Below, in pieces: positions 1,071-17,800 of a stretch of 64,000 nucleotides of DNA. Numbering within the stretch: position 1 is the stretch's first letter; each line of letters begins with the position of its first letter. The stretch lies in NCBI GenBank assembly GCA_965240325.2, contig OZ251228.1, positions 992,001 to 1,056,000 on the forward strand, written 5' to 3'. Under the pieces are notes generated by a model. That model was given only the letters and a program-made list of their open reading frames with translations. It made no database searches and was not told the origin of the DNA. Made by a program: the position numbers and the translations under genes. The DNA is from Rebecca billardiae RCC1528. Lineage: Eukaryota; Protista; Haptophyta.

Positions 1071-1311
1071 TACGATCTCGCCTGCCTGAGCTGTGTGCGT
1101 CTCTTATTATTCTTAGTAAACTGTAGTACTACTGCACTGTTGTAACATCTAGATACAGGTAGGATACGATACACGAGTATTGACTCGCCCATGAACAATC
1201 ACTCGAGTGGCGGGTACCGTACAGTAGGTGCAGTTTACTCATCAGAATCAGAGACGCACATGTACAGTTTACTAAAGAATAAGAGACGCACACAGCTCAG
1301 GCAGGCGAGAT
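1040..1311. mobile_element. Junction cluster of Tc1/mariner-like terminal repeats: right ends 1040-1070 and 1074-1123, ~90-bp spacer, left ends ~1231-1260 and 1265-1311
   Basis: The motif CAGTTTACTAAGAATAAGAGACGCACACAGC(TCAGGCAGGCGAGAT) occurs in both orientations, mostly abutting TA. TA|CAGT termini are typical of Tc1/mariner elements. TACAGTA at 1220-1226 resembles an excision footprint. Confidence 0.7.
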
Positions 1312-1998
1312 CGACGCCCGCCAACTGTCACCGCCCATGAAGCCGTCGTCGCCGATGGCTGCGCCGCCGGAAAATTCGTTCAGCCGTCCGCCTGCGAGGC
1401 CTGGATGAGGGCTGCGGCCGCCTCGCGGCGGCGCGCCAGCGCCCGTCGTCCTCGCCCCACCGTCGTCCACAAAAAAAACCGACAAAACGTCGTCGTCCGA
1501 ACTCGCCGACTGGGCGCCGATGCAACAGCGCGCCGACAGGATGTGAGTAGTAGTATGGAATGTGGAGCCCCACTGTCGGTTGGGGAAGGCGTGTATCAAG
1601 CGGCATGACTGGGGTAGCTTATCACACAGAAGGCCTGGCCCTCACCGGGTCAGGTGATATGGATATGTGCCCCAGTATGGCGCGTCGGCCTCAAAGTCAA
1701 AGCCGGCGGCAGGGTTCTGACACTTCTGAGTTCTGTTGCCCGGAGGGTTCGCTGGCTCACCAGCTGCGAGGGCCGGGGCGTCCGGCTGTTTGCGCTTGCG
1801 GGCTGGGGCCGGCACTGGTGCCACCCCACCGCGTGTGTTGGCAATCAGGAGGCCCACGTCGTCCTAGATAAAGTACCTGATGTGTCCGTTCAATCATAGA
1901 ATGAGTCCTCCCCGTAATGGGCAGGCTGACAATGTTGATGATGTCTTCACAGTCAAGCCCAACGGCAATGCATGATGACACACGACGACACTGTACGA

Positions 1999-2047
1999 CA
2001 GTTTACTAAAAAGAATAAGAGACGCACACAGCTCAGGCAGGCGAGAT
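1999..2047 (+). mobile_element. Internal (nested) copy of the ~46-bp terminal repeat
   Basis: CAGTTTACTAAAAAGAATAAGAGACGCACACAGCTCAGGCAGGCGAGAT; duplicate at 9748-9796. Confidence 0.75.
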
Positions 2048-2383
2048 TTGTAGATTGTATTACCGCCCTTGATTGTATCCACACGTTCGACAAGGGCGGC
2101 GGAGGCTGCTGCCTCCGCTGCTTGCAACTTGAAACGTGTGCTGTCTTGGGTGTGCATGGCACGATCTCGCAGCCGGCGAGATCGACGCGATCGACGCATC
2201 ATCAGCCTTTTTCCCGTCGAAACGCTCGGCCGCCGCCCGGGCCCCGACGTCGCCGGTCCTGACCCGGGCCGCCCTGCAGGACGACTGCTTTGGGAGCCCG
2301 AGCGACGAACAAGCACCTGCCGCCACACGACCTCGTTGTGCCGACGAACTTCCCGCACGTGCCCACGAACGACTCCATACCGC

Positions 2384-5175
2384 ATGCCGCCCGAGTCCTG
2401 CGACGATCTGAGCCGCAAGCTGGCCGAGCTGAGCCCCCAACTCGCGCTGATGATACAAGCCATGGCTGACCTCCTCGTGGAGAGGCGACACCGCGCAGAC
2501 GGCGCGGCCGCAGGCCAAAGCCCGGACGCGCGCAAGGCCTGCATCATGCTGCTGGCAGCGCTCACGGACCACAAGCGCCTCGTCGACTTGGCGACGGAAC
2601 GTGCGCTCCAGGCGCATCCCAAGTGGCCGACCATCCTCTGCGACAAGCTGAACAGCTTGGCGTTCGCCCGCTGGTTGGCAGTCGAGTTGCTCTTCTCGAA
2701 CGAGAACGGCATGGCGGCGCTCAAGAAGCTCGAGTCGTCAGACGATGCCGCGCTGGCCAAGCTGAAGAGCAGGCTCAAGAAATCGCGATCGAGGCGCAGG
2801 GCGAGCAGCACGAAGGACACCCCCAAGTGGGCGCAGGCCCTGGTCTGCCCGTTCTACGACGCGGCGGAGCAGGCGTGCGGGGAGCACGAGGCGATGCGCG
2901 ACATGATCTCGCACGCAGAGACGAGCGGGCTGCGGCAGGTCCTCGAGCGCGGCGGGCTCGTGACGGTGGCGAGCCGCGACGGCGAGCAGATCCTGCTGCT
3001 CGACCCGGAGATCGTGCTCGTGCTCTCGGCGCTCATCGTCCCCCTGGAGCCGCTCCTGTACCGCAAACGCGGCGTGCTCGCGCAACCCGCGATGCCAACC
3101 ACAACAAGGATGGCGCTGGTGCCAGTGTCGCCGCAAGCGCTGCACGGGAACGGCGGCGGCGGCGCGCTCGCGGCGCGGCCCATCGCGCTCGAGCGGCTTG
3201 CCGATCCCAGCTGCCTCGGGCTCCGCTTCGCGCGCGGCGCCCTCATCCGCTGCTCATCGTCGCCGAGCGCGCGCCCATCCTCGTGCCCGCCCGCGGCAGA
3301 TGACGCGGCCGGGCCCGGCGCGGTCCCGCGGCAGGCGCCCATTGCTGCGCTTGCGAGCACCGTCGTGAACGCGGTGTATCTACTGAACGCTCGCGTGACA
3401 GCTCTTGAGGAGCGCGTGCAGGGCGCGGCCGACCCGGTGCGCTCATCGCCATCATCACCGTCGATGGTTCCGACGGCCGTCCCGGCGCCGTCGAGCCCGT
3501 CGGCGGCGGGTGGCGCTGAGCCACCGCCGAGCGCGCCGTTTGGCGAGCAGATCGCGCAGCCGCCGGCAGCAGTGCCGTGCCTCGGCGGCGAGCGCGTCGA
3601 CGACGAGAACGAGTGCCGCGTGCGCGCGCTGCTCGAGCGCGGTGACGATGGGGCTTTTTTCGACGAAGGCCTGATGCTCGGGCGGGACGGCTCCATCCCC
3701 AGCAGCCCGACGAGCTCGCTTGGCTCCATGGTGCCGCGGGCGGCGATTACGGACATTGACGCGTCGATCTCGCCGTCCGACGAGCAGTCGAGCTCGCAGA
3801 CCGCCGAGCTGACGGCAGGGCAGCTGCGCAAGGCAGGCATGGGGTGCGCGCTGCTGAAAGTCGTGGCTTTCTGCCAGCCTCCGTCGCCATCGCAGCGGCA
3901 GGTGTGCGCATGCGGCCCCGCCGCGTCTGCTGCGTCTGCGATCGTGCGCGCCCGGTGCGCACGTCCGCGCATGCCGGATCTCGCTGCTCGCTGCTCACCA
4001 CCACCGGCCGGTTGCGCCCCCGCCCCAAACGCCTTGCGCAGTTCGGCGGGCTGGCCGAGATGCCGCGCGTCTGCGAGTCCTACGCGATGGTCTGGGAGTA
4101 TGTGGTCGAGAAGGTCGCGCCGAATTTCGGCGTCGGCGCGGCGCGCGATCTGTGCGTGCTGCTGGACAAGCTGATCCCGAACGTGTCCGCGCCGCTGGGC
4201 GTGCTGCCGGGCATGATCGGCGTCGACGATTTCACCGATTGGAAGCCGCTCGGCTCTGGGACCCAGGCCAACGTGTTCCAGGCCACGGACTCGCTCGGCG
4301 CGTTGGTCGCGCTCAAACAGATCCGCCTCCACCAGCTGGAGAAGCCGCATGTGGCCGAGATGCTCGTCTCGGAGATCTTGTCGTTGGCGATGCTCGACAG
4401 CCCACACATCGTCAAGTGTGCGTGCCACGCGCAACCCGCCCTCGGCGGCGCGGCGCGCCCAGCGTGGTAGACTACTGGCTGCGTTGTACGCGCGCGACTT
4501 GTGGACGAGCGTGCCAAAGTGCGGTGCGCGCATCCTCACCGGCGCGACCGCCTGCCCTTCATCACCGCGCGCTCGCGCGCGCGCGCAGTCAAGGGCCTCT
4601 TCTCCAATGCTACGGCCGTGTACATCGTCCTCGAGCTCGCCAACGGCGGCACGCTCGAAGACCGCCTGCGCAACACGGGCGGGTCTTTGCCGGAGATCGA
4701 GGCTGCCGGCTCCTTTTTGCAGCTCGCCAGCGGCGCCCTCGAGATGCACAAGCATCACCTGCGGCACGGCGACCTCAATCTGGCCAACATCGTTGTCACG
4801 AAAGAGGGCAGGTGCAAACTCTGTGACTTGGGCCTCACGCGCGAGGTCCTCCCGGGCCAGTACGAGGTGAAGGTCTGGGGCACTTTCGAGTACATGGCGC
4901 CCGAGATGCGAACGCGGCCGGCCGCGTACAACCAGAGCGCGGACGTGTGGGCTCTCGGTATCATCCTCTTCCAGATGCTCGCCGGTAAGCACCCGTTCGA
5001 GCCGCCGCTGACGCCGGCCGAGCTCATCTTCCCGACTGACGAGCCGAACACGTTCCGCGACTCGACTCGGCACCTCGTGCAGATGATGCTCAACCCGAAG
5101 CCGTCAGAGCGGCCGAAGCTCCCCGAGGTCCACGCGCTCGCGAGCGAGTGGATGAAGGAGATCGACGACTCGTAG
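2384..5175 (+). CDS. Ser/Thr protein kinase, copy 1, with a long uncharacterised N-terminal region. Predicted exons ~2384-3901, 4042-4417, 4589-5175; an alternative in-frame ATG lies at 2156.
   Basis: Kinase motifs LGSGTQANV, VALK, HGDLNLAN, DLG, GTFEYMAPE, SADVWALG are split over ORFs 3844..4470 and 4501..5175. GT-AG intron 4418-4588 joins them in frame (HIVK-F-KGLF). GT-AG intron 3902-4041 (phase 0) links ORF 2069..4174; this donor is less certain (GC donor at 3833 also fits the frame). Confidence 0.85.
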
Positions 5176-6128
5176 CGGCGAGGCGCAATCGTCCCCCAGC
5201 AGGACGACTGCCGCCATCATCGGCATCACGAGCGAGCTGCTGCTTGCTGCCAAGCCCGCCAACAGCGGCACGAGCCGCCGCATCAGTGAGTGAGTCCCAT
5301 GCATGACGAGACGACGAGCACGGCCAGCGTGCGCGGCGCGATCCTCCGCAATCGATCAGCAGCAGCGCACCGTCGCTCCCATCAGCCCATCTAGCTGTCT
5401 GCTTCCCATCAGTTGCGCTGAGTGCACTCAATACTTACCGCCAGCATGTGATGCATGAGATATCTCCGCGTTCATCCGCGGCCCTTTTCCGTAGATCGAA
5501 CTCACGAGTCGTATAAGCTAGTAGTTATACTACGTAGTCGTTGCGCCCGTTGCTGGCCCGCGGTGCTGACGATGATTCAAACACAGCATCATCATCAGAT
5601 GACGGGCCGATCGGACGACGATCGATGGACCGACCGAGTGATTCGGCTAGCCGTTCGGGAATCAGGGGCGGTTCGCCGCGAGCCGTGAGTGCGAGTGCGG
5701 CGAGTGCGCCGCGGCTGGCGGCCCGCGCGGTCTGACTCCGACAGTCACGCCCTAGCTGGACTTTTGATGACAGGCGTGCTGACGCGGACGGCGGAGTCGG
5801 CGTCGGTGCCGGGCCCGGAGCAGCCTGACCCTGAGGGTGCTGCTCGGCCCGCTCTCCGCACTGAGACTGCGCCACAGCACTCACAGGACTGAGCGTGAGG
5901 TCTGCGCTTCGCGGCGGTGGAGACGCGCCGTGGCCGAGCCAGCCGCCGCTGCTCTAGCGCTCCTGTTGTGGCGGATGAGGGGCGCGGCGAGACCTGCTGC
6001 GATATGCTGCTGCGACATATGATCTGCCGGCGCGGGCTGCGCGCGCAGGCTGAGGCGGCCCATGCACGGGGCCACAGCACACACGAGTCGTGCGGGGGCG
6101 CGTCATATAGTAGTCTATAGAATGCGCG

Positions 6129-6170
<42 letters not shown>

Positions 6171-6171
6171 A
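6129..6171. repeat. (ATCT)10 microsatellite grading into AT
   Basis: Read directly; the equivalent site in copy 2 is a pure (AT)n tract at 13909-13926. Confidence 0.95.
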
Positions 6172-6651
6172 TGTCTAGCCGTCCTCGTGAACGCCGACGC
6201 CAACTGCTGGCCGAAGGTGGGCACGCCGCCTGGCATGTCAATGCTGAGGCGGCTGCGTGTGTTCCTACTCAGTGGGATTTATGTGTCCTCATGCCTTGGC
6301 GAGCGGCAGCAGATGCGGTGGGCATGCCGCTCGCCGTCGACGAGACGCGGTGCGTGAGAGATGTTGGTCGGTGCACGCGACGCGCCACCCGCGTGCGAGC
6401 CGCCGCCGCCGGCGACGCAGGACGAGCTTGGCTGGAGCAACCTCGCACGCCGCGCCTGGCGAAGCAGGCGGCGGAGGCCGGCGCCGGAAACCGATCTCCT
6501 GGGCGGCAGAAAAACCCGGACAGACTGTTTGTCCGGGAGCAGCCCTTTGAGGCGATGGTCTGTTACAGGGCGATGTGGCTGATGAGCGGCGCTGGCGCCC
6601 GGCGTTCTTGTCGTCCTCTTAGACAATATCAGTTATTGTACCAATAACCCC
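6172..6651. mobile_element. 480-bp non-autonomous element with asymmetric structured ends (member A)
   Basis: Starts TGTCTAGCCGTCCTC and ends CGTCCTCTTAGACAATATCAGTTATTGTACCAATAACCCC; both ends match the reverse complement of the ends of 13927-14664. Confidence 0.75.
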
Positions 6652-6848
6652 ACATATTTAGCAGTAGTGTGTGTGCGCGCGCGCGCGCGCGCGCTCATGA
6701 GGATCCGCCAACTAGCATCAGCTGCTTTTGGCTCGCGGGCCGGCGTCGCAGCTCAGCCGGCTGGGGCACGCGACTGGCAAACACCAGTGATTGACTGCTG
6801 CTGCTCGTGCTGTTCTGAAAATGACAACCACCTGGTCATCTCATCACA

Positions 6849-8030
6849 TCACACGGCGTGTGCAGCCGCCGCCTCCGCCTGCACGGCTTCTAGAACGCCC
6901 ACGTCCTCTGCGAGCGCGCGCATCAGCAGGCGGAACGTCGGCAGGTCGGTCGCGTCCGCGTGCTCGGCGGCGAGCATCCCGCACAGCGCGTCGCGCTGCG
7001 CCGCGTCCACGTGTGCGCACAGCGCCAGCGCAATGCGCGCCAGCTCGAGGGGCGCGACGCCGCCGCCCGCGCCGGCGCGCCCGTTGTCCACGACAAGAGC
7101 GTGCAGCGCGCCGATGGCCTCGTCGCGCACGCCCGCGTGCGCCGGATCGACGAGCGCGCGGAGCAGCGCGTCCGCAACCACGGGCCGCGCAGTCACGCAC
7201 TCTGGGTGGGCGCGCAGCCGACCGCGCGTCGCCTCGTCCGCGCGCACCAGCCGCTCCGCCGCCGAGCGAAATCGCGTGCGCCTCGCGCACGCCGTCTGCC
7301 GCCCACGCCTCGGCCGGCACCGCGCTCGCGACCGCGCGAACCAGGGCCGCGGCCGCGCCGCATCCGCTGCTGCTGCGTGCGCCGCGCCCAGCGCGCCGAC
7401 GATGAGCTGGGCGGCCTCGGCCTCGGCGGCGACGTCGGCGCGCGAGGCCTCAGCCACGTGCGCGAGCGGCCTAGCCAGCGCGTTCCATGCGCGCGGCAGC
7501 AGCAGCAGCAGCAGCAGCGGCAGCAGCGGCAGCAGCGGCAGCAGCGGCAGCAGCGGCAGCGGCGGCAGCAGCAGCGGCGGCGGCAGCAGCAGCGGCAGCC
7601 CGGCGCGCGTGCACGCTCCGTCACGAGCTCGCGGCGGCGGCAGCGGCGGAGACAATGCTCGCGCCGCGCTCAGCGCCGCCGCGCGCACCAGCTCTGCGGC
7701 GAGCTGATGCCCTCGGGCCGGCGCGCGCGCCGAGCGCACCGAGCAGCTGGCACACCACCGGGCGCAGCGCCGCAAGCGCGAGCAGCTCGTGCCCGCCCTC
7801 CGCCGCACCGCGCGCACCGCGCGTCGCGCACAGCTCAGCGGCGCGCGCGCTTGCAGTCGCCACGGCCGCATCCGGCCACAGGGCGAGCACGCCGCCCACG
7901 AGCGCGTGCGTCTGTCTCGGCCTGGCCCGCGCCGGCCCGCGCCCCGCGCCGCCTGGTCGCGGGCGCGCGCAGCAGCTCGTTCGCCAAAGCGCGCGCCGCC
8001 ACGCGCCTCCACTCGAGCACGCGCGTGCTC
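6849..8030 (-). pseudogene. Rearranged partial duplicate of the exportin-6-like gene (3' portion with internal deletions, frameshifts and triplet expansion)
   Basis: 6849-7270 is near-identical to 14863-15283, then jumps to parent ~16215 (~930 bp missing). There is a ~40-bp deletion near 7358, and more diverged matches to ~16500-16790 and ~17020-17120. The N-terminal importin-beta region is absent. Confidence 0.85.
7494..7599. repeat. Expanded CAG/CGG triplet repeat (~35 triplets)
   Basis: Read directly; the parent gene has only ~(CAG)5 at ~16480-16496. Confidence 0.9.
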
Positions 8031-8722
8031 GCGCAGCGCGCTCGAGGACGCGCCGCAGCCGATCTTCAGCGCCCAGGCCGACGGCGCCGCAGAGCGCGGG
8101 CGTCCTCGTCCACGCGCGCGCGCGCACACGCGCCGCGCCGAGCGGCAGTGGCCAACGCGAGGTGGCCCGCGCGGTGGCGGCGGCGGTGCCAAGGGCGCGG
8201 TCGGGCGCCAGCCGCGGGAGTGATGAGGCGTGATGGCAGGGGACTCGCGCGAGGGGGGAGTCCAGCGCTCGGCAGCCACACTCGCGCCGTGCCAGGCCAC
8301 GAGCGCGCGCGGGTCGGTGCGACGCCGCCGCCATCGCGCGCATCAGCCGCAGCGCCAGCTTGCTGTGCGCGCGCACGAGGTCGAGCTTGGCGTCGTCTGC
8401 GAGCACAGACGGCGAGGCGTGGGCGGGGTGGGCGGGCAAAGCCGTCTCGGTCGAGTGCGCCCGAGCGCACGCCACCACCCCGAGCGCACGCCACCACCCC
8501 GCACGGAACCGTCCAATCACCACCGTGTGCGCGTGCACGCGACACTGAGCCAGCGCAGCGCGACCGAGCTGAGACACGGGCAGCAGCGAGGGCGATACGT
8601 GTCAGGCCCACCGCGAGCGCGCGGCCGAGCCGAGCCCCAAGCCGCGACCGCACGAACCAGCAGCCGCGACCGCAAGCACGCGTGCGATCGCGCAGCCGAG
8701 CGTGCGGCCGGACACGCGATTC

Positions 8723-9051
8723 GCTGTGTGCGTCTCTTATTCTTAGTCAACTGTACTGTGCCTTTGTGCAGTGTTGGATGGCGTTAATCACGCCTTAACC
8801 AAGTGTGCACGTTAAATCATAGTAAACTGTAGTACTACTGAACTGTTGTAACATCTAGATACAGGTAGGATACGATACATGACTCGCCCATGAACAATCA
8901 CTCGAGAGGCGGGTACGTACAGTTTACTAAGAATAAGAGACGCACACAGCTCAGGCAGGCGAGAGGTACAGTTTACTCATCAGAATCAGAGACGCACATG
9001 TATACAGTTTACTCAAGAATAAGAGACGCACACAGCTCAGGCAGGCGAGAT
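8723..9051. mobile_element. Second junction cluster of terminal repeats: right ends 8723-8753 and ~8820-8829; left ends 8920-8964, 8969-8998, 9005-9051
   Basis: Same motif, each copy abutting TA; the content differs from the first junction. Confidence 0.7.
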
Positions 9052-10132
9052 CGACGCCCGCCAACTGTCACCGCCCATGAAGCCGTCGCCGATGGCTGCG
9101 CCGCCGGAAAATTCGTTCAGCCGTCCGCCTGCGAGGCCTGCGAGGCCTGGATGAGGGCTGCGGCCGCCTCGCGGCGGCGCGCCAGCGCCCGTCGTCCTCG
9201 CCCCACCGTCGTCCACAAAACCGACAAAACGTCGTCGTCCGAACTCGCCGACTGGGCGCCGATGCAACAGCGCGCCGACAGGATGTTAGTAGTATGGAAT
9301 GTGGAGCCCCACTGTCGGTTGGGGAAGGCGTGTATCAAGCGGCATGACTCTGGGGTAGCTTATCACACAGATGCCAGAGTCAGAAGGCCTGGCCCTCAGG
9401 TGATATGTGCCCCAGTATGGCGCGTCGGCCAGTCAAACTCAAAGCCGGCGGCAGGGTTCTGACACTTCTGTTGCCCGGAGGGTTCGCTGGCTCACCAGCT
9501 GCGAGGGCCGGGGCGTCCGGCTGTTTGCGCTTGCGGGCTGGGGCCGGCACTGGACCTGGTGCCACCCCACCGCGTGTGTTGGCAATTCAGGAGACCCGCG
9601 TCGTCCTAGATAAAGTACCTGACGATGTGTCCGTTCAATCATAGTTAGAATGAGTCCTCCCCGTAATGGGCAGGCTGACAATGTTGATGATGTCTTCACA
9701 GTCAAGCCCAACGGCAATGCATGATGACACGCGACGACACTGTACGACAGTTTACTAAAAAGAATAAGAGACGCACACAGCTCAGGCAGGCGAGATTTGT
9801 AGATTGTATTACCGCCCTTGATTGTATCCACACGTTCGACAAGGGCGGCGGAGGCTGCTGCCTCCGCTGCTTGCAACTTGAAACGTGTGCTGTCTTGGGT
9901 GTGCATGGCACGATCTCGCAGCCGGCGAGATCGACGCGATCGACGCATCATCAGCCTTTTTCCCGTCGAAACGCTCGGCCGCCGCCCGGGCCCCGACGTC
10001 GCCGGTCCTGACCCGGGCCGCCCTGCAGGACGACTGCTTTGGGAGCCCGAGCGACGAACAAGCACCTGCCGCCACACGACCTCGTTGTGCCGACGAACTT
10101 CCCGCACGTGCCCACGAACGACTCCATACCGC

Positions 10133-12924
10133 ATGCCGCCCGAGTCCTGCGACGATCTGAGCCGCAAGCTGGCCGAGCTGAGCCCCCAACTCGCGCTGAT
10201 GATACAAGCCATGGCTGACCTCCTCGTGGAGAGGCGACACCGCGCAGACGGCGCGGCCGCAGGCCAAAGCCCGGACGCGCGCAAGGCCTGCATCATGCTG
10301 CTGGCAGCGCTCACGGACCACAAGCGCCTCGTCGACTTGGCGACGGAACGTGCGCTCCAGGCGCATCCCAAGTGGCCGACCATCCTCTGCGACAAGCTGA
10401 ACAGCTTGGCGTTCGCCCGCTGGTTGGCAGTCGAGTTGCTCTTCTCGAACGAGAACGGCATGGCGGCGCTCAAGAAGCTCGAGTCGTCAGACGATGCCGC
10501 GCTGGCCAAGCTGAAGAGCAGACTCAAGAAATCGCGATCGAGGCGCAGGGCGAGCAGCACGAAGGACACCCCCAAGTGGGCGCAGGCCCTGGTCTGCCCG
10601 TTCTACGACGCGGCGGAGCAGGCGTGCGGGGAGCACGAGGCGATGCGCGACATGATCTCGCACGCAGAGACGAGCGGGCTGCGGCAGGTCCTCGAGCGCG
10701 GCGGGCTCGTGACGGTGGCGAGCCGCGACGGCGAGCAGATCCTGCTGCTCGACCCGGAGATCGTGCTCGTGCTCTCGGCGCTCATCGTCCCCCTGGAGCC
10801 GCTCCTGTACCGCAAACGCGGCGTGCTCGCGCAACCCGCGATGCCAACCACAACAAGGATGGCGCTGGTGCCAGTGTCGCCGCAAGCGCTGCACGGGAAC
10901 GGCGGCGGCGGCGCGCTCGCGGCGCGGCCCATCGCGCTCGAGCGGCTTGCCGATCCCAGCTGCCTCGGGCTCCGCTTCGCGCGCGGCGCCCTCATCCGCT
11001 GCTCATCGTCGCCGAGCGCGCGCCCATCCTCGTGCCCGCCCGCGGCAGATGACGCGGCCGGGCCCGGCGCGGTCCCGCGGCAGGCGCCCATTGCTGCGCT
11101 TGCGAGCACCGTCGTGAACGCGGTGTATCTACTGAACGCTCGCGTGACAGCTCTTGAGGAGCGCGTGCAGGGCGCGGCCGACCCGGTGCGCTCATCGCCA
11201 TCATCACCGTCGATGGTTCCGACGGCCGTCCCGGCGCCGTCGAGCCCGTCGGCGGCGGGTGGCGCTGAGCCACCGCCGAGCGCGCCGTTTGGCGAGCAGA
11301 TCGCGCAGCCGCCGGCAGCAGTGCCGTGCCTCGGCGGCGAGCGCGTCGACGACGAGAACGAGTGCCGCGTGCGCGCGCTGCTCGAGCGCGGTGACGATGG
11401 GGCTTTTTTCGACGAAGGCCTGATGCTCGGGCGGGACGGCTCCATCCCCAGCAGCCCGACGAGCTCGCTTGGCTCCATGGTGCCGCGGGCGGCGATTACG
11501 GACATTGACGCGTCGATCTCGCCGTCCGACGAGCAGTCGAGCTCGCAGACCGCCGAGCTGACGGCAGGGCAGCTGCGCAAGGCAGGCATGGGGTGCGCGC
11601 TGCTGAAAGTCGTGGCTTTCTGCCAGCCTCCGTCGCCATCGCAGCGGCAGGTGTGCGCATGCGGCCCCGCCGCGTCTGCTGCGTCTGCGATCGTGCGCGC
11701 CCGGTGCGCACGTCCGCGCATGCCGGATCTCGCTGCTCGCTGCTCACCACCACCGGCCGGTTGCGCCCCCGCCCCAAACGCCTTGCGCAGTTCGGCGGGC
11801 TGGCCGAGATGCCGCGCGTCTGCGAGTCCTACGCGATGGTCTGGGAGTATGTGGTCGAGAAGGTCGCGCCGAATTTCGGCGTCGGCGCGGCGCGCGATCT
11901 GTGCGTGCTGCTGGACAAGCTGATCCCGAACGTGTCCGCGCCGCTGGGCGTGCTGCCGGGCATGATCGGCGTCGACGATTTCACCGATTGGAAGCCGCTC
12001 GGCTCTGGGACCCAGGCCAACGTGTTCCAGGCCACGGACTCGCTCGGCGCGTTGGTCGCGCTCAAACAGATCCGCCTCCACCAGCTGGAGAAGCCGCATG
12101 TGGCCGAGATGCTCGTCTCGGAGATCTTGTCGTTGGCGATGCTCGACAGCCCACACATCGTCAAGTGTGCGTGCCACGCGCAACCCGCCCTCGGCGGCGC
12201 GGCGCGCCCAGCGTGGTAGACTACTGGCTGCGTTGTACGCGCGCGACTTGTGGACGAGCGTGCCAAAGTGCGGTGCGCGCATCCTCACCGGCGCGACCGC
12301 CTGCCCTTCATCACCGCGCGCTCGCGCGCGCGCGCAGTCAAGGGCCTCTTCTCCAATGCTACGGCCGTGTACATCGTCCTCGAGCTCGCCAACGGCGGCA
12401 CGCTCGAAGACCGCCTGCGCAACACGGGCGGGTCTTTGCCGGAGATCGAGGCTGCCGGCTCCTTTTTGCAGCTCGCCAGCGGCGCCCTCGAGATGCACAA
12501 GCATCACCTGCGGCACGGCGACCTCAATCTGGCCAACATCGTTGTCACGAAAGAGGGCAGGTGCAAACTCTGTGACTTGGGCCTCACGCGCGAGGTCCTC
12601 CCGGGCCAGTACGAGGTGAAGGTCTGGGGCACTTTCGAGTACATGGCGCCCGAGATGCGAACGCGGCCGGCCGCGTACAACCAGAGCGCGGACGTGTGGG
12701 CTCTCGGTATCATCCTCTTCCAGATGCTCGCCGGTAAGCACCCGTTCGAGCCGCCGCTGACGCCGGCCGAGCTCATCTTCCCGACTGACGAGCCGAACAC
12801 GTTCCGCGACTCGACTCGGCACCTCGTGCAGATGATGCTCAACCCGAAGCCGTCAGAGCGGCCGAAGCTCCCCGAGGTCCACGCGCTCGCGAGCGAGTGG
12901 ATGAAGGAGATCGACGACTCGTAG
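10133..12924 (+). CDS. Ser/Thr protein kinase, copy 2. Predicted exons ~10133-11650, 11791-12166, 12338-12924.
   Basis: Offset +7749 from copy 1, with identical translated ORFs; one synonymous AGG/AGA difference noticed (2773 vs 10522). Confidence 0.85.
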
Positions 12925-13908
12925 CGGCGAGGCGCAATCGTCCCCCAGCAGGACGACTGCCGCCATCGGCATCACGAGCGAGCTGCTGCTTGCTGCCAAG
13001 CCCGCCAACAGCGGCACGAGCCGCCGCATCAGTGAGTGAGTCCCATGCATGACGAGACGACGAGCACGGCCAGCGTGCGCGGCGCGATCCTCCGCAATCG
13101 ATCAGCAGCAGCGCACCGTCGCTCCCATCAGCCCATCTAGCTGTCTGCTTCCCATCAGTTGCGCTGAGTGCACTCAATACTTACCGCCAGCATGTGATGC
13201 ATGAGATATCTCCGCGTTCATCCGCGGCCCTTTTCCGTAGATCGAACTCACGAGTCGTATAAGCTAGCTAGTAGTTATACTACGTAGTCGTTGTATGCGC
13301 CCGTTGCGGGCCCGCGGTGCTGCCACGATGCATGATTCAAACACAGCGCATCATCATCAGATGACGGGCCGATCGGACGACGATCGATGGACCGACCGAG
13401 TGATTCGGCTAGCCGTTCGGGAATCAGGGGCGGTTCGCCGCGAGCCGTGAGTGCGAGTGCGGCGAGTGCGCCGCGGCTGGCGGCCCGCGCGGTCTGACTC
13501 CGACAGTCACGCCCTAGCTGGACTTTTGATGACAGGCGTGCTGACGCGGACGGCGGAGTCGGCGTCGGTGTCGGGCCCGGAGCAGCCTGACCCTGAGGGT
13601 GCTGCTCGGCCCGCTCTCCGCACTGAGACTGCGCCACAGCACTCACAGGACTGATGAGCGTGAGGTCTGCGCTTCGCGGCGGTGGAGACGCGCCGTGGCC
13701 GAGCCAGCCGCCGCTGCTCTAGCGCTCCTGTTGTGGCGGATGAGGGGCGCGGCGAGACCTGCTGCGATATGCTGCTGCGACATATGATCTGCCGGCGCGG
13801 GCTGCGCGCGCAGGCTGAGGCGGCCCATGCACGGGGCCACAGCACACACGAGTCGTGCGGAGGCGCAGTCATATAGTATAGACGTAGTCTATAGTAGAAT
13901 ATGCGATA

Positions 13909-13926
13909 ATATATATATATATATAT
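13909..13926. repeat. (AT)n microsatellite, resumed at ~14665-14674 after the inserted element
   Basis: Read directly. Confidence 0.9.
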
Positions 13927-14664
13927 GGGGTTATTGGCACAATAACTGATTGTCTAAGAGGACGGTGGGAGCGCAATGCGCCGTATCAACACCTGCCTGC
14001 CATTCAGCCTGAGCCAGGCGGCCGAGCTCAAGTCCGGCTGCCATCTTGGCCACCCTCTTCTCGTGCCACAAGGGACTTTCGAGCCCGTGCTCTGTGTGCA
14101 CGCACGGCGGCCTAGAACGACCTACTCACTGCGCTGCTCCTGGGCCATAGGCTAACTAGGCATGGTTGGCATGGCGGTCAGGACGGCCAATTCGTGAACT
14201 GGGTTTTTTCATCAGGCGCCGAGCCAACCGTTACCGTCGCTGCTGCATGCCTCCCGCTCACTCGCAGCGAGCACCCGTCGGAAGCGCCCACTGTCCTGAT
14301 GGCTGCAGCTGTTTCCGGCGGCCCGCAGCTTCGAGGCGCCCTGTGCGCGATGTCCTTCGTGCCTCGCTGTCGTGTGGCTTGGCGGCTCTCGAGCTGCGTC
14401 GTCCAAGCTGCCCCGCCCGCCCACCCCTGCTGTTGGCAGCTACTTGATGTTGCCTCACACCGCGCGTCTGTCGGCGTTGAGCGGCCAGTCCTGCCGCGCG
14501 CTCGGTCCGAGCGCTGGCTGCCGCTCGCACTTTGTTTCGAGGAACAAAAATCCCATACAATGTATAGAGTCTGGTCTCTCGCCGCGTGGCTCCGCCCTGC
14601 CCGGCGTGTGCCTCGCCTCCTCGCTGCATCTGGATGGCGCAGGCGCTCCGAGGACGGCTAGACA
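13927..14664. mobile_element. 738-bp non-autonomous element with asymmetric structured ends (member B, opposite orientation to A), inserted in (AT)n
   Basis: Starts GGGGTTATTGGCACAATAACTGATTGTCTAAGAGGACGG and ends GAGGACGGCTAGACA; flanked on both sides by AT repeats. Confidence 0.75.
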
Positions 14665-14862
14665 TATATATATAGCAGCACTGTGTGTCTGCGCGCGCGC
14701 TCATGAGGTCTGAGGATCCGCCAACTATAGCATCAGCTGCTTTTGGCTCGCGGGCCGGCGTCGCAGCTCAGCCGGCTGGGGCACGCGACTGGCAAACACC
14801 AGTGATTGATGCTGCTGCTCGTGCTGTTCTGAAAATGACAACCACCTGGTCATCTCATCACA

Positions 14863-17800
14863 TCACACGGCGTGTGCAGCCGCCGCCTCCGCCTGCACGG
14901 CTGCCAGAACGCCCACGTCCTCTGCGAGCGCGCGCATCAGCAGGCGGAACGTCGGCAGGTCGGTCGCGTCCGCGTGCTCGGCGGCGAGCATCCCGCACAG
15001 CGCGTCGCGCTGCGCCGCGTCCACGTGTGCGCACAGCGCCAGCGCATCGCGCGCCAGCTCGAGGGGCGCGACGCCGCCGCCCGCGCCGGCGCGCCCGCTG
15101 TCCACGACAAGAGCGTGCAGCGCGCCGATGGCCTCGTCGCGCACGCCCGCGTGCGCCGGATCGACGAGCGCGCGGAGCAGCGCGTCCGCAACCACGGGCC
15201 GCGCAGTCACGCACTCTGGGTGGGCGCGCAGCCGACCGCGCGTCGCCTCGTCCGCGCGCACCAGCCGCTCCGCCGCCGAGCGAAACGCGGCGCGCGCGCC
15301 CGGCCGCGCGAGCGCGTGCGCGTACGCGCCGACGAGCGCGCGCACGGCGCCCGGCGTCACCTCGAGCTCGCGCCAGCGCTCGCGCACGAGCACGTCGAGC
15401 ACGCGATGGTACCGCGGCGCCGACGCGCGCCGGCTGGCGCCCGACTCGAGCCGCGCCGCGCACAGCTGCAGCGCGGCCGCCCAGTGCGCGCGCGAGCCGC
15501 CGACCATCGCGAGCAGCCGCAGCAGCAGGCGCTCGAGGGCGGCGCCGGCGCGCTCGCTGCCCGGCCCGCCTGCCGTGCGCACCGGCCGCGCGGCGTACGC
15601 CACGAGCTCGTCGAGCAGCGGCGTGAGCGCACCCAGCGCGCCGCCCGCCGCGCCGCGCGCGCCTGCCGGCGCGGCCGCGAGCGCGAGCGCGAGACCTGCA
15701 AGCGCGCCGAGCGCACGCGCGCACGCCTCGCGCGCGGCGGGGTCAGTGGCGCGCTCGTCGACGCTCGCGTAGTGCCGGATCAGCGCGGCTGCGACGGGCA
15801 GCAGCGGCTCCAACGCGCCGTGCGCCGCGTCCACCGCCGCGCGCGCCAGCCCATGCGACGCGCGCACCAGCGCCGTGAGCGCGCGCGCCCCAGCTGCGAC
15901 CTCGCGCGCCGCTGCCGCCTCGCCCGCGCCCGACGGCGGCGGCCACGCTCCCGGCGTGAGCGCGTCGGCGCGCGGCGTGCCCGCTGCGTCGAGCAGGCCG
16001 CACGCATGCCACGGGGCTGCCGCCACGCGCACGAGCACGCCGACCGCACCCGCGCCCCACTCCGCCGCGCCGTGCGCGCGGCCGGCGGCGTGCGCGGCCG
16101 CTCGGAGTGCGAACAGGCTCAGAGCGCCGCACATCGGCGCACGGCCACGAGCGGGCAGCGCGATCATGAGTGCGTGCGCGTCGGCAACGAGCGCGTGCAC
16201 GGCCGAGCGCACGCTCGCGTGCGCCTCGCGCACGCCGTCTGCCGCCCACGCCTCGGCCGGCACCGCGCTCGCGACCGCGCGAACCAGGGCCGCGGCCGCG
16301 CCGCCGAGCGCGGCCGCGGCCGCCCGCCCGTCGGCCGACGCCGCATCCGCTGCTGCTGCGTGCGCCGCGCGCAGCGCGCCGACGATGAGCTGGGCGGCCT
16401 CGGCCTCGGCGGCGACGTCGGCGCTCGAGGCCTCAGCCACGTGCGCGAGCGGCCTCGCCAGCGCGGGCGCGAGCGCGCGCAGCAGCAGCAGCAGCCCAAC
16501 GCGGGCGCACGCGCCATCGCGAGCTCGCGGCGGCGGCGGCAGCGGCGACAAGGCTCGCGCCGCGCTCAGCGCCGCGCGCGCGAGCTCCAAGGCGAGCTGG
16601 CGCCCTCCGCCCGCGCACGCATCGAGCGCGCCGACCGCCTGGCACGCCACCGGGCACAGCGCCGCAAGCGCGAGCAGCTCGTCCCCGCCCTCCGCCGCAC
16701 CGCCCGCACCGAGCGGCGCGCACAGCTCAGCGACGCGCGCGCTCACAGCCGCCGCGGCCGCATCCGGCCACAGGGCGAGCACGCCGCCCACAATGTCAGC
16801 CTCCGTGTGCGCGTCGACGAGCGCGGCCCGCGCTGCGGGCACGGCTGCGTCATCCTCGTCGCTCTCGCCGCTGCTATCCACTGCGCCGATCATCGCCCCC
16901 GCCGCCGCGCCGCCGTCGCCACCGCCGTCGAGGTTGTCGTCATCATCGTCAGCGCCCTCATCCGCGGACGCTGCGGAGGCGCCGCTGTCATCGTCGGCGT
17001 CAGCGTCGGCGTCGGCGGGGCCCGGGCCCGCGGCAGCCTGCGCCCCACGCCGGCTAGGGGAGGGCCCGCGCAGCAGCCCGTCGGCCAGCACGCGCGCCGC
17101 CACGCGCCTCCGCTCGAGCACGTGCCGCAGCAGCTCCCCGTGGCCCGGACCGAAGGCGGCGCAGAATTCGTCACGGCTGAGTCCGAGCGGTCTCGCGCGC
17201 GTGCCCTCCTCGCGCACGCACGCGCCCAGCCCGTCGAGCAGCGTGGCCCACGCGCGGTAGCACGCGCGCGCGGCGGCGCGGGTGCCAGGGGCACACGTCA
17301 GCGCGAGCAGCGCGCCGAGCAGCGCGCCTGCCTCGTCGCTGTACGGCACTGTCGCCGCGCCGCCGATCCGAGGCAGCACGTGCGCACACATGGCCTGCGC
17401 GCACTCTGCGAGCGCGCGCGCCTCCGCCGTCGCTCCCTCGGCGCGACGCGCCTCGGCGGGTGACGCGGCTGCGCGGCGGAGCGCCTGCTCGAGGTGTGCC
17501 AGCGCCGGCACGAACAGGCTCGCCGCGTCCGCCGCGCGCACGTTGCGCTCGAAGAGCGTGCGCGCGCACGCGAGCGCGCGGGCGCGATGAGCCGCGCTCG
17601 GCGCTGCAAAGCGCGCGCACAGCGCTGGCACGAGCTGGGGCGGGACGGACTGCGCGCTGACGGGGAGCCACTGGGCGCACGTACTGAGCGTGTCGAGTGC
17701 GTCGGCCTCAACGCCCACGCCACCGCCACCTCCGTCATCCGCCCCGGCCGCCGCCGCGAGCGCATCCGCCGCATGCGCAAACACGGCGGGCGCAGCAGCC

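Follow-up and report, generated by a model that had tools for sequence, protein, structure and literature searches.

The 64,000-nucleotide stretch of Rebecca billardiae RCC1528 analyzed here (the window; C11:992001-1056000, in a 72 Mb assembly of 41 contigs with ~70% G+C that was searched as a whole) carries two inserts which, judging from their sequence, are probably non-coding single-unit copies of two sister families of tyrosine-recombinase retrotransposons of the split-direct-repeat kind (PAT/Ngaro/VIPER layout), inserted independently of each other. Insert 1 is a 481-bp copy on the plus strand (6173-6653; 5'-GTCTAG...CCCCAC-3') of a family with a GTA hairpin loop. Insert 2 is a 739-bp copy on the minus strand (13925-14663; 5'-GTCTAG...CCCCAT-3') of a sister family with a GCA loop, and its final base departs from the usual C. 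Both are single units without an internal joint. The original prediction had described different inserts with the same ends, in opposite orientation at an equivalent microsatellite, and this was borne out. Of its two explanations, that of two independent insertions of a non-autonomous (TA)n-targeting family also held, except that there are in fact two sister families with only end signals in common.

The inner hairpin of insert 1 (6632-6648, plus strand; GTTATTG-TAC-CAATAAC) stops 5 nt before the 3' end, and that of insert 2 (13931-13947, minus strand) has the loop TGC on the element strand. The 5' end signals are GTCTAGCCGTCCTCG in insert 1 (6173-6187, plus strand) and its counterpart in insert 2 (14649-14663, minus strand). 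Within the window, the 20-nt hairpin end was found only at 6632-6651 (minus) and 13927-13946 (plus), with 0 matches expected from shuffles, and the 15-nt opposite end only at 6172-6186 (minus) and 14650-14664 (plus), with 0.09 expected. The termini are not local, since the genome contained 345 matches to the hairpin end (0 for a reversed-pattern control) and 261 exact copies of the opposite, 5' end. Exact matches to the GCA-loop hairpin end numbered 64. The invariant 7-bp stem with a GNA triloop that had been proposed was confirmed, the loop being GTA or GCA in all the genomic matches listed.

The genome also contained 70 seamless head-to-tail joints in which CCCCAC meets GTCTAG with no base between the ends. 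Therefore, the true element is 5'-GTCTAG...CCCCAC-3'; both ends lie exactly where they had been predicted, but the outer T and A of the proposed TGTCTA and TAGACA are flank. Copies sit between the T and the A of (TA)n. Six A/T bases precede 158 of the 191 5' ends outside joints (83%), ATATAT precedes 96 of the first 100 5' ends among the matches listed, and all 15 of the sampled 3' flanks start with ATA. The ends abut the T and A of the repeat and the joints have no extra base; inside a microsatellite, a 2-bp AT duplication would stay hidden. A miniature inverted-repeat element of the Tc1/mariner type (a terminal-inverted-repeat transposon with a TA duplication) was rejected, as the ends do not form inverted repeats and no TA is present at the joints. 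Metagenome scans gave 0 matches to the joint and only two chance matches to the hairpin plus CCCC, in AT-rich unrelated DNA. At two hairpin ends, L002 (C1:1523833) and L023 (C5:563392), the sequence leaves both families right after the hairpin (e.g., ...CAATAACTGAGTGTGTCCTCG); these are possibly further relatives or rearranged copies.

Units of the GTA-loop family share their 5' part, A (~190 nt), and their 3' part, B (~300 nt), and vary in the middle, which is 0, ~226, ~516 or more nt long, so that units measure ~480, 727, and 1017 bp. Insert 1, which consists of A (~190 bp) joined directly to B (~298 bp), matches these parts of 727- and 1017-bp units elsewhere at 96-98% identity and differs by ~4% from its nearest relatives. 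One 3076-bp unit was also seen, apparently with a nested insertion. This nested insert, probably a further small transposon, measures ~2.3 kb and lies 145 nt from the 3' end of the unit (L019:1646-3020 and L020:1-640; C3:2839.5-2841.5 kb). GTGGCACTGGGT motifs recur at its start, and its ends resemble GGGGGTGG.

In the GCA-loop family, units of 555-739 bp are built from a separate pair of parts, A' and B', and nothing but the terminal signals is common to it and the GTA-loop family; a ~840-bp unit followed by a long unit also occurs there. Insert 2 is 97.6-99% identical to its nearest relative, copy L024 (C5:845.8 kb). A third sister family was represented by an 817-bp element (L048:5438-6254; C23:75438-76254) flanked by (AT)48 and (AT)34. 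It has a different A and B, the same inner hairpin, GTCTAA...TTAGAC, and the GT...AC ends by which we refer to all three families. The ten longest open frames of six elements gave nothing credible in a Pfam scan; in Pfam searches of the two inserts, insert 1 had no match and insert 2 no credible match.

The evidence that bears most directly on the kind of element comes from copies with two units. The full form of the GTA-loop family is A1-X-B1/A2-Y-B2 (the slash marks the joint), ~727 plus 1017 bp, where X and Y are unrelated to each other and the internal B1/A2 joint is an exact fusion of the 3' and 5' ends. The order of ~727 and then ~1017 bp is repeated at at least 12 loci with different flanks, which argues that the joints are not random dimers. 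In copy C1_402, B1 and B2 show one difference, compared with 31-32 in 300 positions from the B of other copies. In C3_068, B1 equals B2 and has six differences from the main type, and B1 also equals B2 in C3_097 and C5_197. In C3_284, A1 equals A2 with six differences from all other copies, and a variant peculiar to this copy is common to both B ends. Thus, A and B show 0-1 differences within a copy and 6-32 between copies, in three lineages; in C3_035, an older two-unit copy, the repeats have diverged. The variant positions lie 130-240 nt inside B, away from the tip, and the B variants of two-unit copies are also present in single units.

This within-copy identity suggests that the repeats are rebuilt on one template in each cycle. 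At the level of sequence, it is the signature of split-direct-repeat retroelements of the PAT, Ngaro, and VIPER type. It argues against a Helitron heterodimer, which gives no reason for B1 = B2; nor would one expect a family moved in that way to show an X/Y heterodimer with B1 = B2 and A1 = A2 across three diverged lineages. Comparison of the repeats within copies is therefore a simple discriminator between the two readings.

The Helitron reading is nevertheless the one that the anatomy of the ends brings to mind, and the original prediction had noted a likeness to Helentron/Helitron2 elements. Under it, the inserts would belong to a non-autonomous Helitron2/Helentron-like family: an HUH Rep protein nicks at the 5' GT and peels off the strand as far as the hairpin and its AC, the circle inserts at T^A, and arrays arise when termination is missed. 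We regard this as unlikely, but as a serious contender. Two features agree with the description of Helitron2 (PMC3627910): the 3' hairpin stops 5 nt short of the end, and a short inverted repeat links the 5' end with the region upstream of the hairpin. Head-to-tail arrays, here seamless and of up to four units, are known as tandem Helitrons (PMC5148889), and single units of one structural type were found at many loci.

In Helitron2, asymmetric terminal inverted repeats of 8-15 bp are defined, with the 3' arm just upstream of the 3' hairpin (PMC3627910). The invariant arm GTCTA/TAGAC, 5 nt upstream of the hairpin and accompanied by an interrupted family-specific outer arm, fits this geometry; its length of 5 bp does not. 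In insert 1, the GTCTA of the 5' signal pairs with TAGAC at 6619-6623 once the ends are joined. The first 69 nt of the 5' end on their own folded no better than shuffles (z = +1.36), so a 5' hairpin is lacking. The first base is G and the insertion site T^A, as opposed to a 5' T at T^T. The likeness that had been noted thus holds loosely for the anatomy of the ends; the lack of a 5' hairpin, the starting G, the T^A target, and the homogenized repeats within copies speak against it, as do the unrelated ends of the Helitrons of this genome that are described below.

Once joined, the ends fold well. The real joint gave z = -4.4, and the same rod-like stem-loop of three storeys was obtained from this joint and from virtual joints made with single units from each of the three families. 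Innermost is the invariant 7-bp GNA hairpin, followed by TAGAC/GTCTA and then by an outer stem that differs between families, being GGCGTTC/GAACGCC in one and GCGCTCC/GGAGCGC in the other; the end-to-end bond falls 5 nt past the inner hairpin. Covariation support for the outer stem is modest because just two pairs are fully compensatory (doubly compensated) between families. An Rfam scan of positions 5500-15500 of the window found nothing.

To look for the mobilizing enzyme, whole-genome profile searches were done with PF14214 (Helitron Rep), PF05970 (PIF1), PF07282 (TnpB/Fanzor), PF01797 (Y1), PF00589 (tyrosine recombinase), and PF00078 (reverse transcriptase). The partners proposed originally were a Rep/helicase, an HUH Y1 enzyme, a tyrosine recombinase, or TnpB/Fanzor, and none of the six profiles co-located with family ends or with long copies (8.8 and 7.8 kb on C15, 5.6 kb on C10, and 4.5 kb on C22). 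The long copies on C15 and C10 are at C15:1823.3-1833.0 kb, C15:1870.1-1878.7 kb, and C10:1973.8-1980.3 kb. The class assignment thus rests on structure and on the behaviour of the repeats, and the link of the GT...AC families to a reverse transcriptase and recombinase is one that we infer. Y1 transposase and TnpB/Fanzor had no match in the genome, and control genomes were positive.

Helitron Rep domains were present at five loci and belonged to two families. We examined 150 kb around these RepHel loci to define the ends. Four of the five are a young Helitron family of 10.6-11.2 kb with copies up to 99.9% identical, whose presence speaks for the Helitron2-like alternative. Its ends, 5' ACGCACAAC... 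and 3' ...CTGCCTCAAC, are unrelated to the GT...AC ends, and neither the family hairpin nor the 5' end flanked any of the five loci. The fifth, a single copy on C39, had no recognizable matching ends. Copies of the young Helitron family (C23:58859-69493, C33:779120-790352, and others on C7 and C13) have open frames of 2,865-3,640 codons, and two of the copies are cut off before the helicase.

The tyrosine recombinase profile gave five matches at 25 bits, below the Pfam cut-off, at C33:128.8 kb, C38:21.1 kb, C12:523.1 kb, C18:1305.4 kb, and C23:1222.8 kb. The reverse transcriptase profile gave 55, among them weak families such as those at C11:73.6 kb and C16:603.6 kb. That the recombinase matches do not adjoin any reverse transcriptase match leaves room for an element that relies on DNA alone, in which a Crypton-like tyrosine recombinase or an unrecognized enzyme acts on folded or palindromic joined ends and lets one- or two-joint circles enter TA repeats. 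Single units appear mobile, the joint (ACGT) and the target (TA) are palindromic, and together with the flanks the ends read TGT...ACA, all of which would suit such a mechanism. We consider it improbable: a conservative DNA mechanism leaves the homogenized A and B repeats unexplained, the recombinase matches are weak, and no such element with GT...AC ends was seen. Tyrosine recombination had been mentioned in the original prediction on the grounds of inverted arms around a core; the direction appears the likelier one, but for a different reason, the behaviour of the repeats.

The position of the two inserts is explained by the history of the host DNA. The inserts lie in a tandem duplication, of which copy 1 (1226-7294) carries insert 1 and copy 2 (8964-15306) carries insert 2, both delimited by the paralogous match. 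On the left, 1226-6112 and 8964-13878 are 98.0% identical, and on the right, 6654-7294 and 14668-15306 are 96.1% identical. Because the flanks are paralogous, a single ancestral microsatellite must be the site of both inserts, whose orientations are opposite. The target left of insert 1 is a (TATC)n tract that ends in TATAT (6129-6172), and the right flank begins with ATATTT at 6654. The hairpin end of insert 2 adjoins an (AT)9 tract (13909-13926), whose final two bases fall within the nominal end of the insert because this copy ends in CCCCAT. Further (AT)n at 14664-14674 adjoins the other end.

Part of a further repeat unit precedes these two. Positions 1-1073 and 7684-8756 are 99.9% identical, the one stretch of blocks 0 and 1 that is comparable. 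A family 5' end oriented like insert 1 was found shortly before the start of the window, 7,691 bp upstream of the insert, which together with the 99.9% stretch indicates that blocks 0 and 1 separated from each other more recently than from block 2 (98% identical). Insert 1 probably entered before the duplication of blocks 0 and 1, and insert 2 entered block 2 independently. The upstream 5' end is at C11:990482-990496, 1.5 kb before the window and one repeat unit before insert 1. No hairpin end (≤1 mismatch) was found for it among the matches listed, and this copy may be damaged.

The second explanation in the original prediction was that exchangeable cassettes are swapped at a fixed att-like site, TGTCTA-AGAGGACGGC-TAGACA, in keeping with the way in which the same ends enclose different interiors at one paralogous site. 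This did not hold up, and we find it extremely unlikely. The empty site TGTCTAAGAGGACGGCTAGACA had 0 matches with ≤2 mismatches in the 72 Mb, the ends occur at hundreds of different (TA)n loci, and a block order of ((0,1),2) with two separate insertions is sufficient to explain the pattern. TA tracts are scarce (~12 loci in 214 kb sampled), and many of those sampled already adjoin ends of GT...AC or other elements, so repeated hits on one tract are unsurprising. The same site with different cargo is thus ordinary target saturation of scarce TA tracts.

The interiors of the two inserts did not align, as had been stated. On a common strand, ~16 nt are common at one end and ~40 nt, including the hairpin, at the other. 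The short internal motifs that had also been claimed are present and in the same order, with GGGATTT followed ~26 nt on by GCGAGCGGCAGC, ~100-140 nt from the 5' end in both inserts; GGGATTT is present in the third sister family too. In total, however, the inserts share eight 9-mers, not clearly more than in shuffles, which averaged 2.8 and reached 12.

Other elements were seen at the TA tracts of this genome, which attract several unrelated kinds. One of them (L049:5165-7026; C33:775.2-777.0 kb) has inverted TACAGTGGGC...GCCCACTGTA ends, is located between two long (AT)n tracts, and looks like a TA-targeting terminal-inverted-repeat transposon. The remainder of the window includes a 228-bp satellite of ~75% G+C with ~188 copies at 95% identity (20686-64000), which runs past the window end.

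In the split-direct-repeat reading that we favour, a sub-genomic RNA would be copied into complementary DNA (cDNA), and the missing tips would be rebuilt on the internal B1/A2 joint, in a manner comparable to the use of the internal complementary region of DIRS-1. Enzymes provided in trans would then recombine the structure formed by the joined ends into T^A of a TA repeat. The single units (A-B and A-X-B) could be collapsed products of recombination between repeats or one-joint circles that were integrated directly, analogous to SIRE of VIPER and to the solo AB repeats of Ngaro.

Several observations weigh against this proposal. The commonest form, A-B of ~480 bp, is not derivable from A-X-B/A-Y-B by one recombination, and no joint followed by a ~480-bp unit was present among the joints listed. 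Together, these two points suggest that single units may themselves be mobile, which favours a Helitron-like or a DNA-circle mechanism, and the Helitron2-like alternative explains self-moving single units more simply. The comparison of repeats within copies covers 5-6 of the roughly 60 two-unit copies, and local gene conversion could mimic concerted repeats. The genome profile searches revealed no coding copy with GT...AC ends, and no recombinase or reverse transcriptase match inside long copies, beside a family end, or near each other. Classical tyrosine recombinases use 6-8-bp overlaps, and a clean exchange at one phosphodiester (AC/GT with T/A) is unlike classical tyrosine recombination.

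In a more novel reading, the three-storey hairpin of the joined ends would serve, in single-stranded form, as substrate for an enzyme other than a Helitron RepHel or the classical pair of reverse transcriptase and recombinase, one that cuts and joins exactly a single bond (AC/GT with T/A). The GT...AC elements would then form a separate class of microsatellite-specific single-strand transposons, with self-moving A-B units. We give this idea little credence.

If the split-direct-repeat assignment is right, this alga carries recombinase-type retroelements that choose one bond in TA microsatellites almost without exception and have a conserved folded joint where their ends are fused. To our knowledge, there has been hardly any experimental work on the integration of DIRS, Ngaro, and PAT elements. 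It would become testable with a non-coding substrate that is small, young, and high-copy and whose joint and target are defined. The contribution of the window is the paralogous double hit. For annotation, the GT...AC elements mimic Helitron2 ends closely enough to be misfiled. On a known kind of element, there is here a conserved folded joint and an unusual target habit, which as far as our searches went is undescribed: TA-microsatellite targeting was not found in the literature on Ngaro- and PAT-type elements, and no relevant description was found in that on Pavlovales repeats.

Non-autonomous Helitron2 elements (Helitron-1N1_CRe; HINE/DINE-1) resemble the GT...AC families in their asymmetric ends, 3' hairpin with an upstream arm, apparent lack of a target duplication, tandem arrays, and variable interiors (PMC3627910, PMC5148889). 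The GT...AC families differ in having no 5' hairpin and no RepHel partner that shares their ends, in starting with G at T^A, and in the concerted repeats of their two-unit copies. In DIRS-1 of Dictyostelium, experiments have shown that restoration of the ends from a shorter transcript, through a single-stranded cDNA intermediate, depends on the internal copy of the joined ends (PMC7192593). The rebuilding of termini on an internal joined-end copy, the single-stranded cDNA stage, and the self-complementary junction would be the points of likeness. Unlike the elements described here, DIRS-1 has inverted terminal repeats and an internal complementary region, and prefers to insert into DIRS-1 copies.

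SIRE of Trypanosoma cruzi, an abundant short derivative of VIPER that corresponds to its A2-B2 region, is likewise a short non-coding element in which a 5' repeat is joined to a 3' repeat, and it may be either a mobile element or a remnant, as may the single units described here (PMC6681497). Strict (TA)n targeting and a conserved hairpin at the joined ends set the GT...AC families apart from SIRE/VIPER, and no coding parent with their ends was found. The closest layout is that of Ngaro and of PAT-like elements such as Pat1 and TOC1. Ngaro is organized as A1-(open reading frames)-B1A2B2 with scattered solo AB repeats (PMC8547959), and in the A1-B1-A2-B2 arrangement of the PAT type the internal repeat pair can occupy different places (PMC4157794). 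The A1...B1A2...B2 order, the equality of A1 with A2 and of B1 with B2, the solo AB repeats, and the lack of an evident target duplication are common to these elements and to the GT...AC families, whose copies differ in being gene-less (1.7 kb) and in having bodies on either side of the internal joint.

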